Source of the DNA: Hormiphora californensis
Lineage: Eukaryota > Animalia > Ctenophora
Direction: 5' to 3'
DNA length: 64,000 nt
NCBI GenBank assembly: GCA_020137815.1
Contig: CM035351.1
Location: 4,588,001-4,652,000 of the forward strand
Below, one piece after another: positions 9,387-59,135 of this stretch; positions within the stretch are counted from its first letter, which is position 1, and each line of letters opens with the position of its first letter. A program made the position numbers and the translations under genes. The notes under the pieces are model-generated. The model saw only the letters and a list, made by a program, of their open reading frames with translations. It did not search any database and was not told where the DNA came from.

Positions 9387-12300
9387 CTACAACTTATCGT
9401 AGTAATTCTCGAACTGTGGCAGCTCATCCTTGAGACCCTTTCGTTTCCTTGTGGTCATGACGATTCCGTTGGCTTGACTTCCAACGGTCATGGGGTCAGA
9501 TGGCAGGTTCTGAAGGGGGATGTTGGGTTAGTGGACGATATTAGGATACCGAATTACAATGGATTCTAAAATGGTATTGCTTGAGCAACACTAAAATACA
9601 CAATTGAAGGGTAATACTTACAGCCCAATGATCGAAGACACACTGAGGGAAGGCCTGTCCACCGGTGGCAGCCCTGAGAGCACTGGAGAATCCGAATGAC
9701 TCGTTGACGGGGAGATGAGCCTTGACCATGAACATGGGTGTTCCCTCAACCTGGAACTCCTCAATGACAACACCCCTCCTCTTGGTCAGGGTACCGTAGA
9801 TTCCTCCAACGCTGTTCTCGGGACACTGGATCTCGCACAGGTAGACGGGCTCCAGAAGGGAAGGCTCAGCTCGGAGCACGGAAGCGTACACGACACGTCG
9901 GGTGGTGGGGATGATCTGGCCACCTCCCCTGTGGATAGCATCAGCGTGGAGGGCGACATCGTGGACGTTAATCCTGACACCTCGCATGTTCTCGTCACAG
10001 AGCACACCCTCGTTGGCGGCCCACTGGAATCCAGCGACAACGGAATCCTTGATTTCGTTCAGGTACTGCACTCCCTTGGAGACATCAGTCACCAGGTTGG
10101 GTCCAGTCTGGTCGGGTCCGAAACACCAGATCTTCCTGGCATCGTTGACGTTCCAGTCGTTCAGGCCGGGTTCGGCAACATTTTCCGGGAACTTGTCGGT
10201 GATGATCCTGCGGGGAAGGGGTGGGTGAGTTGGGGAGGTCTACATCTCTCTCTGGTATATACACCCCATGTAATGTAACACACACACGGTCACATTCGAG
10301 CGTGTTACATTACACGGCTCTGTGGATGAATTTTGATAGACGCGCGGGAAGACGTACTTTTAGAATGCTGTCCACTGCAAGTTTACATAATCGCGCACGC
10401 GCACACCGCACCAAGTGAGAGAGAGGGGGAGTTGCAGCCTCTCTCTCGGGCGATGTAGGGGAGAGGGGAGGGGAGAGACTGACACGTCAAGTAGAATGGG
10501 AGCAGGATGTGGTGTGTGTGGAATGGGAGTGGCGACTACCATTGAAATTGAATCAAACATTCAGACAGACCAACAGACATATACCAATATTCTAGCACCC
10601 TAGGGGGACCCTCTCAATCACCGGTAACTTTCTGCAGGATTGAACAGAGAATATCGGCCCTAGTTACGGCATATTTTAGTGTTCCTGAGATTAGTTCATC
10701 GGGGAGGTGCCCGGAGCTCCAAACGGCCCTAATTGCACCCTTTTGGTCGACACAACACGTCACACTGCCCTCCTCTATTCTCTCCTCAGCCCCCGTGGGA
10801 TCAGGGATGGTTGTACCATCGAACACTAGGGAGGGGAGGAATGGGGTCAGGAAACTGGGAGGGAAGTGGTCAGGAATTGAGAGAGGAGGAAAGAATGAAA
10901 CACTAGGGAGGGGAAGGAAGGGGTCAGGAAACTGGGAGGGAAGTGGTCAGGGATTGAGAGAGGAGGAAAGAATGAAACACTACGGAGGGGAGGGAAGTGG
11001 TCAGGAATTGAGAGGGTCAGGAATTGAGAGGGGAGAGAGGACACTGGAGAGCTAGAGAGAGGACCAGACAGATATTGATAAGGTAGAGCGTCCAAGGAGA
11101 TCAATTTCAAGGAATTAAATGTGTTAGGATGAGGTCATGCGAGAGAGGGGGAGAAAGAGAGAGAGAGAGAGAGAGAGAGAGAGAGAGAGAGAGAGAGAGA
11201 GAGAGAGAGAGAGAGAGAGAGAGAGAGACAGAGAGAGAGAGAGAGGGGGGGGGAGAGTTTAAACTGATAAGATCATCACCTGATAATGTAACAGAAACAG
11301 GAAGATAGTTCAACTTCAACTTTACTCCCTCCCCATCCCTATCCACAGCCACCACATCTGTCTCTGCCGAGTACTGGGTGGCTGGCAGGGTGGCTGATTT
11401 GAGTGCCGCTGAGGTGGCTAACAACAAGGCATCCCACACATTTCCATCATCATTCAGACATACCGCATCAACGTACAGACACCAAGACGTCTTGCCGGGC
11501 CGGACACATAACTGTGTCTTGTCCACAACTTTATCAAGTACGGCAGCCAGTCGACACGACATAGCAACAGCTGTGTCACTGGGCATTCCGGGTCGATATT
11601 TAGAGTTGCAGAGAGAGGGAAGGGTAACATTGGGTACCACAAACCCCTCACCAGGCCTGTCTATATCAGGTTGTGCAAAGCGGCCCTTTATCCCCGCTAT
11701 TACTCGAGTATCCCCAAAGCACACCATTGAACTGCCGAGAGCAGTGGAGATAGAGTTGACATGAAGTTTGATATCCCGGCAAGAGGTAACAGCCCGGCCG
11801 TCCGGTCTGATGGATTCTCGGAGGAAGAGGCGGTGGTACTGGTGGGGTTGGGCAACTTTGAAATCGTCAGCCATGGCTATAGAGGGGGAACACGGGGGTT
11901 TACTTTGTTCTGTGTAACAGAGAGAACGGAACAACTTTCATATAATGGGATACTGTACAATGTGGGAACAGGTGTCGTGGATGTGTGAGTACGTATGCAG
12001 TAGAGATAGAGGGGGGGGGAGAGAGAGAGAGAGAGAGAGAGAGAGAGAGAGAGAGAGAGAGAGAGAGAGAGAGAGAGAGGGAGGGATCGATGAAGCATGT
12101 GATCATAATTAAGATACATTTGTTTAACAGCGTAGTGCTACGTCACGGGTGATCAAAGGGGGATATTATGTAACCGCAGTGGGCAGCATTCCCAGTAACG
12201 CGCAATCGCACTTGGTTACCATGCCCTTAAGGGTACACCTGGCGTTTTTCATCATCGAGTGCCCAACCAAATGACTTCACCAGGGTTTAGGCCATACAAA

Positions 12301-58652: not shown

Positions 58653-59135
58653 CTGAAATACGTGACACCGTTAGTTGGTCCCGTGTAAATCTGAAATACG
58701 TGACACCGTTAGTTGGTCCCGTGTAAATCTGAAATACGTGACACCGTTAGTTGGTCCCGTGTAAATCTGAAATACGTGACACCGTTAGTTGGTCCCGTGT
58801 AAATCTGAAATAGGTGACACCGTTAGTCGGTCCCGTGTAAATCTGAAATACGACATACGTGACACCGTTAGTTGGTCCCGTGTAAATCTGAAATAGGTGA
58901 CACCGTTAGTTGGTCCCGTGTAAATCTGAAACACGTGACACCATTAGTTGGTCCCGTGTAAATCTGAAATTAGAAATACGTGACACCGTTAGTTGGTCTC
59001 GTGTAAATCTGAAACACGTGACACCGTTAGTTGGTCCCGTGTAAATCTGAAATTAGAAATACGTGACACCGTTAGTTGGTCTCGTGTAAATCTTAAATAT
59101 GTGACACCGTTAGTTCGTCCCGTTTAGATCTAAAA
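58618..59135 (-). repeat. 38-bp tandem array (~13 copies) of a PITRM1 acceptor plus the exon start
   Basis: Unit cag|ATTTACACGGGACCAACTAACGGTGTCACGTATTT encodes the conserved IYTGPTNGVTY; only the last copy continues FRCL. Confidence 0.93.

Follow-up and report, generated by a model that had tools for sequence, protein, structure and literature searches.

Tandem repeats that overlap splice junctions have been described in a small number of systems. In amphioxus, 'mirage' minisatellites are found in the Adh3, globin, troponin C and PGBD5 genes. Their units span an intron-exon boundary, either 5' or 3', and are length-unstable, and normal splicing is reportedly undisturbed (PMC3087553, PMC3902484). 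In human F7, intron 7 carries a 37-bp variable number tandem repeat (VNTR) whose first unit spans the exon-intron boundary. The identical pseudo-sites are silent, and the most upstream, exon-adjacent donor is chosen by 5'-to-3' scanning (PMC1557585). A related idea, the Rogers model, holds that introns are gained or grow when a segment containing AG|GT is duplicated in tandem (discussed in PMC3087553). Here we describe eight tandem arrays at the 3' ends of introns in a 64,000-nt stretch of the ctenophore Hormiphora californensis (GCA_020137815.1, contig CM035351.1, positions 4,588,001 to 4,652,000 of the forward strand; hereafter the window, in which positions are counted from 1). The repeat type is already known from amphioxus and human F7; it is unusually common in our H. 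californensis sample.

The H. californensis genome comprises 110 Mb in 44 scaffolds, with 13% tandem repeats and nested intronic genes, and spliced-leader trans-splicing was detected on at least 56% of Iso-Seq reads (PMC8527503). Like the amphioxus repeats, the ctenophore tandem unit spans the intron-exon boundary and carries a splice signal, but the ctenophore arrays reach a far higher copy number (56), are apparently pervasive and occur in a different phylum. As in the F7 VNTR, an authentic site stands beside near-identical pseudo-sites. The F7 repeat lies on the donor side, however, whereas the ctenophore acceptor arrays have the authentic site last, which means that a decoy would be chosen if scanning started at the first branch point. 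The likeness to the Rogers model lies in a duplicated splice-signal segment that alters intron-exon structure, and the ctenophore introns are enlarged. Unlike in that model, no new intron is created here; an existing intron grows longer as its own end is copied.

Tandem arrays at intron ends in the window

Arrays were called with Tandem Repeats Finder (TRF) on the 64-kb window, and each was then read on the strand of its gene. Decoys were counted as copies of the motif 'AG + exon start' in each array. An earlier note on this DNA had listed six arrays, in EXOSC8, TBC1D32 (two), SLCO, PITRM1 and a gene that it left without a name, and TRF recovered all six. The copy numbers given there hold for EXOSC8 (3), TBC1D32 (3 and 7) and SLCO (2), and change slightly for the unnamed gene (from ∼55 to 56) and PITRM1 (from ∼13 to 12 plus one degenerate copy). 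TRF also found two arrays that were absent from the list, one in EEF2 and a second one in SLCO.

The arrays run head-to-tail inside genes, with 2 to 56 copies and 85-94% matches. In all six listed arrays, the unit consists of the intron end, AG and the exon start, as the note had described; it comprises a motif like a branch point and a pyrimidine tract, together with AG and 4-36 nt from the start of the exon. The AG is intact in every decoy of all six, and a ctaac-like motif is also retained. These six units span the boundary and include the splice dinucleotide, whereas those of the EEF2 and second SLCO arrays do not. TRF further reported higher-order periods of 79 and 83 bp. Together with a near-to-far gradient of divergence in PITRM1 (see below), these periods are typical of minisatellite turnover, and the high identity between copies is as in young or homogenised arrays.

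The largest array (41984..44200, minus strand; TRF 41 bp x55.3) lies in the gene without a name, where units of 41 and 38 bp carry the motif ttctaac...tctctgatttcag|GAGCAAGTTGA (also written ...tctctgatttcag|GAGCAAGTTG). Eleven nucleotides of the unit are exon-derived, AG is present in 56/56 copies, and most copies are 93-96% identical in the upstream 28 nt. Homologue matches identify the gene as NMNAT-like (Pfam PF01467), also on the minus strand. A search of protein representatives with a 45-residue frame retrieved a 299-residue protein on a 1.9-kb contig, and therefore from an intron-free transcript, that shares 82% identity with a Mnemiopsis protein; no protein of H. californensis itself turned up in the protein searches. 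The exon that directly follows the last copy (EQVDEIVMDKNVVCVTPSPQSVVGMIQFCPKFNTHE; 41887..41994, minus) corresponds to residues 135-170 of this homologue. The upstream exon (TGDTVAVLLTEEHLEQMTQLPQ; 44527..44592, minus), whose donor opens a 2,532-nt intron (41995-44526), corresponds to residues 113-134, so that both flanks of the array-filled intron are adjacent in the homologue. Two other candidates for this gene were discarded: a TFB1M-like identity found no support, and a transketolase-domain lead was overridden by the NMNAT-like homologues.

In PITRM1, the array (58617..59141, minus; TRF 38 bp x13.3) is built from units that include AG and the first 36 nt of the exon. Since the exon's own coding sequence, IYTGPTNGVTYF, contributes ctaac and a tatttc tract, every copy resembles a complete acceptor. 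The exon itself (IYTGPTNGVTYFR; 58458..58652, minus) matches human PITRM1 residues 565-628 and the M16C_assoc domain, both from its second residue. The frame is closed by a stop codon six codons before the last AG, so only this AG fits. The four decoys nearest to the real acceptor share its 25 nt before AG, and the distal copies have diverged. Over a stretch of more than 9 kb before 58652 (59136-68000 examined), no further PITRM1 exon was found, though the exon lies in the middle of a conserved domain. This points either to a PITRM1 intron of exceptional length for this genome or to short or diverged exons upstream.

TBC1D32 contains two arrays on the plus strand. Array 1 (22865..22986; TRF 43 bp x2.8) has three copies of cag|AACGAGATC in units of 43/41 bp, each made of a retroelement tail, tcccacccgatcag and AACGAGATC, with 9 exon-derived nucleotides. 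The exon that follows (22977..23162, plus) has 62 codons in phase 0 and was placed by its frame and GT-AG signals; a Pfam search with it gave no match. Array 2 (23732..24002; TRF 39 bp x6.8) has seven copies of tgtcag|GTGACCAAACTAAGTTTGA at 23738-23978, with 19 exon-derived nucleotides. The exon before the array (23377-23566) stops after the first base of a codon, and only the last copy is in frame (G|GT GAC CAA ACT AAG TTT GAT TGG), while the decoys read GAC TGA. The exon behind the last copy (23984..24155, plus) matches BROMI_C over residues 4-54.

AG abuts GT in TBC1D32 array 2 (cag|GTGACC), as it does in an array outside the window (L045:7555-7900; ctag|GTCTAAC), which is reminiscent of recursive splice sites. 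However, the regenerated donor is weak (GTGACC/GTCTAA, not GTAAGT), the introns measure ∼0.4 kb and most arrays have no AG|GT. None of the arrays examined combines a strong, GTAAGT-like donor with a long intron.

The EXOSC8 array (10822..11041, minus; TRF 77 bp x2.9) consists of three copies of cccctccctag|TGTT, the last of which leads into exon 2 (10620..10825, minus; first base 10825, acceptor AG 10827-10826). Only ∼4 nt of the unit derive from the exon. Exon 1 aligns with residues 3-200 of human RRP43 and exon 2 continues from residue 201, at ctag|TGTTCGATGG. Two ctenophore homologues (P0012 and P0014) are collinear over this junction (VTVS|IFDG), and exon 2 matches RNase_PH_C with E=0.006, below the curated cut-off.

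The first SLCO array (47861..47966, plus; TRF 54 bp x2.0) is a duplication with copies 92% alike, in which 25 nt of intron including cag are joined to ∼27-31 exonic nucleotides. Because the unit keeps the frame and contains no stop codon, use of the upstream AG would add an 18-residue insertion and not break the message. The exon after it (GIGNTPLQICGPTYIDE; 47940..48305, plus) matches OATP over residues 1-122 (E=7e-28).

The two arrays beyond the list are both pyrimidine-rich and end before the splice site. In EEF2 (15762..16035, minus), each 27/28-bp unit has tctaac and none has AG; the array ends 1 nt short of the acceptor AG (15761-15760), and the exon after it matches GTP_EFTU in Pfam. 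The second SLCO array (49014..49232, plus; periods 24-80) stops 24-25 nt before the acceptor ctccaag|GATCGG, after which the exon starts at 49258. A Pfam search of this 40-aa exon gave no match.

Taken over the listed arrays, the claim that only the last copy continues into coding sequence agrees with matches in Pfam, the PDB and ctenophore homologues, which begin at the first residues of the exons; for TBC1D32 array 1 it is backed by the frame. In five of the six, productive mRNA is predicted from the reading frames to require the last copy, as any decoy would lead to a stop codon. A run labelled as RNA (X8) gave only pieces of 31-62 nt over 10501-16500, with zero splice joints. The arrays also occur in a second DNA sample, in which contigs continue from EXOSC8 exon 2 into the array. 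Short-read contigs break within the arrays other than that of EEF2, where this sample carries a 6-nt deletion and a 52-nt 'goes back' joint, variants of the indel and extra-unit kind.

Enrichment of arrays at acceptors

The recurrence of the arrays was assessed in a sample of 333.6 kb, made up of 168 kb from the window and its flanks, 80 kb from contig 1 and 3 kb from each of 29 loci. The assembly has 110.7 Mb in 45 contigs; the sample is small, and it includes the ascertained window. Locus-specific arrays with a period of at least 15 and a score of at least 100 (n=41) were compared with 4,000 random intervals. A coding-like frame lies on the acceptor side only in 17/41 arrays, as against 18% of the random intervals (p=7e-4), and on the donor side only in 3/41, as against 16%. 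For units of at least 27 bp the acceptor-only fraction is 14/29 (p=2e-4 against the same baseline). The enrichment of arrays at acceptors over random positions, which the earlier note had anticipated, was thus borne out in this sample.

Overall, ∼18 of ∼42 substantial locus-specific minisatellites are acceptor-sited. The span from -26 to +36 nt of an acceptor has an array density 3- to 16-fold that of other non-coding DNA, a range that follows from a rough exon count of 200-400 acceptors. Put differently, acceptor zones make up ∼5-10% of the non-coding DNA and hold ∼40% of the substantial local arrays. Manual reading revealed ten more acceptor arrays outside the window, or about one per 27 kb, and the recurrence of one design in unrelated arrays, noted before for the window, extends to these. 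In five of the ten, the exon has a Pfam match from residue 1-3 (GMP_PDE_delta, Acyl-CoA_dh_M, FERM_M, ABC2_membrane and PK_Tyr_Ser-Thr). The flank tests and the acceptor arrays found outside the window show a real recurrence that goes beyond the stretch that first drew attention.

These results bear on the simplest explanation, namely that ordinary intronic minisatellites overlap acceptors by chance, or that the arrays are artefacts of the assembly. The genome is certainly rich in tandem repeats, with 67 TRF rows in the window and 13% of the genome overall (PMC8527503). Against this stand the flank tests against random intervals, the Pfam-confirmed exons directly after the arrays and the contigs of the second sample that run from EXOSC8 exon 2 into the array. 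We therefore regard chance or artefact as scarcely credible.

It is a different matter whether the process is specific to acceptors. A clear donor-side array (L045:113-1153, equivalent to G000:C1:2030113-2031153) consists of 18 copies of a 57-bp unit, formed by the last 48 nt of a RING-finger exon and GTGAGTACA. This unit is in frame without a stop, so splicing from later donors would lengthen the protein by repeats of 19 residues. Two further arrays may also be of the donor type. Beyond the ascertained window, 10 acceptor arrays face 2-3 donor arrays (p=0.04-0.09), and the arrays are not convincingly specific to acceptors. The presence of donor-side arrays in the same genome ties the process to junctions generally and not to acceptors alone, and the anchoring at 3' splice sites that the note had proposed is not supported in this strict form.

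The same note had suggested a mutational origin. Such a process, acting at intron 3' ends, could make or expand arrays through stalling and template switching at C-rich tracts, whose G-rich opposite strand could form G-quadruplex or triplex DNA, or through breakage coupled to transcription or splicing. The excess among units of at least 27 bp and the density of arrays in the acceptor zone are in line with it. So are the pyrimidine-rich sense strands of about half of the acceptor arrays (EEF2, EXOSC8, second SLCO, L039:8968, L045:7555 and L010), and the 3' ends of the arrays, which are spread from -26 to +36 about the AG with no fixed point. Nevertheless, small duplications (score <100, n=66) show no such bias, with 9 acceptor-only and 10 donor-only cases, which equals the baseline. 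Microsatellites (n=68; 5 acceptor-only, 10 donor-only) likewise lack an acceptor excess, and they include (CT)n and (GA)n tracts without acceptor adjacency. In addition, the units of the NMNAT-like, PITRM1, TBC1D32 array 2 and L006 arrays are not pyrimidine-rich, donor arrays exist, and the contrast between acceptors and donors outside the window is weak. Pyrimidine-tract slippage as a general cause was dropped, as neither the microsatellites nor the small arrays support it. A mutational process at intron ends thus appears rather unlikely as the source of the arrays, and the claim of such an origin loses ground with the unbiased small repeats.

Retroelement tails beside the arrays

Two of the eight window arrays, TBC1D32 array 1 and PITRM1, begin at the (CAAA)n tail of one retroelement family, in sense orientation. 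In TBC1D32, the SINE/LINE-like tail (22823..22878, plus) is 5'-truncated, measures 56 nt and ends in (CAAA)n. In PITRM1, the tail (59151-59206, reverse complement) lies 16 nt before the array. The family has at least 166 candidate copies genome-wide, many of which are 96-100% identical over the searched 56-nt 3' tail. As the unit of TBC1D32 array 1 holds a tail that is 100% identical to other copies, this array must be recent and younger than the retroelement insertion.

This association raises the question whether the arrays are by-products of retroelement insertion, by target-primed reverse transcription, beside acceptors. Yet none of the 29 other fetched copies has an array after its tail, no target-site duplication matches a unit and the other six window arrays have no adjoining retroelement. 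The units are also unique within the 334-kb sample: BLAST searches found zero matches beyond the array itself, except for the (CAAA)n part of TBC1D32 array 1, so the units do not show the dispersal of transposon-derived intron sequence. Retroelement insertion was rejected as a general cause on the strength of the 29 array-free copies and the missing target-site duplication, and we consider it very improbable as the origin of the arrays.

As a separate observation, 3 of the 31 retroelement copies examined precede an acceptor by no more than ∼55 nt, all in sense orientation: the one in TBC1D32, the one ahead of the PITRM1 array and one in L014, which is 33 nt from a GRAM-domain-like exon. The family may prefer intron ends for insertion.

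Gene context and other repeats

The NMNAT-like gene extends over at least 12.7 kb (32352-45106, minus). Two other frames sit in its introns, a GPCR-like one that is itself intronless (38376-39458, plus) and one that resembles cathepsin (34662-35660, minus). The window did not yield residues 1-79 of the NMNAT-like protein, which include the GSFDPIT motif. The corresponding N-terminal exons may be located in or beyond an assembly gap (46443..46542), which separates the NMNAT-like exon at 45002-45106 from the SLCO exon at 47166 onward. Neither an array nor an array-bearing intron spans this gap.

EXOSC8 is nested within an EEF2 intron, on the minus strand. The same region holds a 1.3-kb palindromic element (12224-13530) of very high copy number, with a summed contig word depth of ∼1e5 in run X1 as against <100 in neighbouring bins. 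The element is an insertion polymorphism, as contigs of both the source and the second sample join 12223 to 13531. At its end, 19 nt past an EEF2 donor, a 21-bp array begins (13534-13711). This array belongs to a group with units of 19-30 bp that contain the palindrome GTTRCCATGGYAAC, which resembles an RFX X-box; further examples lie at 56730-57511, L049:1718-1805 and L011:2187-2253, without any link to acceptors. A dispersed 24-bp satellite family (CTCTGGAACGGGGTAAACTATCCT, TGGAACGGGGTCAGCTGTCTTCTC) was also seen in unrelated introns (60530-60664 and L040:7961-8540).

Discussion

We propose that the arrays are splice-junction minisatellites of the 'mirage' type, grown by local duplication and kept by a splicing filter, which we regard as the probable explanation. 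They would originate from local tandem duplication of the last 2-116 nt of an intron with the first 0-36 nt of the exon, though some duplications may have stopped up to ∼25 nt before reaching the AG. The arrays would then expand by replication slippage or unequal exchange, so that an intron of ∼100-400 nt could grow to as much as 2.5 kb. To persist, an array would have to leave splicing intact. Frame and homology suggest that the exon-adjacent copy is the one spliced, since it alone precedes the whole exon and its downstream donor. Use of the decoys would be rare, or its products would be cleared by nonsense-mediated decay.

The filter in this proposal would act on the duplications themselves. 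The real site would survive a duplication that spans the acceptor only if the copy brings its own branch point and pyrimidine tract. With this filter, and with short duplications being the commonest, one would expect minimal units of ∼38-55 bp that hold a branch point, a tract, AG and a little exon.

Several points weigh against this proposal. Which AG is used has been deduced from frame and homology only. A neutral model does not predict that ∼18 of ∼42 arrays fall into 5-10% of the non-coding DNA, and a symmetric filter would not lead to more acceptor than donor arrays, as seen in the sample. An explanation through very short introns also fails to cover PITRM1, as its intron would exceed 9 kb. 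The filter leaves the excess over intron interiors unexplained, so there is room for a junction-linked bias in mutation or expansion, perhaps at C-rich tracts with a G-rich opposite strand, or for selection, to which together we give a minor but appreciable share of the probability.

Selection for function could mean that the arrays serve as reservoirs of branch points and tracts that aid a weak acceptor, or as decoys that send an adjustable fraction of transcripts into nonsense-mediated decay, the expression dial of the earlier note. The EEF2 array fits the first version, as it multiplies tctaac and pyrimidine units over ∼270 nt with no AG in the units, much like an AG-exclusion zone upstream of a distant branch point. 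The decoys of the other arrays have all retained their AG. The same would, however, be expected of young, homogenised and neutral arrays, the host genes are functionally unrelated, and the number of copies, anywhere from 2 to 56, follows no visible pattern. We consider selection for function improbable.

Returning to splice-junction minisatellites under a filter, a bolder version can be formulated. A junction-linked process, whether mutational or selective, would seed or expand minisatellites at intron ends, especially at acceptors, and several percent of introns would bear arrays of intact decoy sites. The spliceosome would strictly take the exon-adjacent site, and the arrays would constitute a major route of intron growth in a compact genome with trans-splicing of most mRNAs. 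We put this forward tentatively and consider it doubtful. If it were true, the spliceosome would ignore dozens of perfect units of branch point, tract and AG.

For studies of gene structure, the arrays are an annotation trap, as gene finders and read aligners can select a decoy copy. For the biology of splicing, arrays with 7, 12 or 56 sequence-identical decoy acceptors provide a natural, allele-graded experiment on the choice of the 3' splice site, which pits branch-point scanning against exon definition. The experiment takes place in an animal near the base of the animal tree in which spliced-leader trans-splicing also occurs. Should the junction excess prove to be genome-wide, it would bear on how introns grow and on the ∼13% of tandem repeat in this compact genome.

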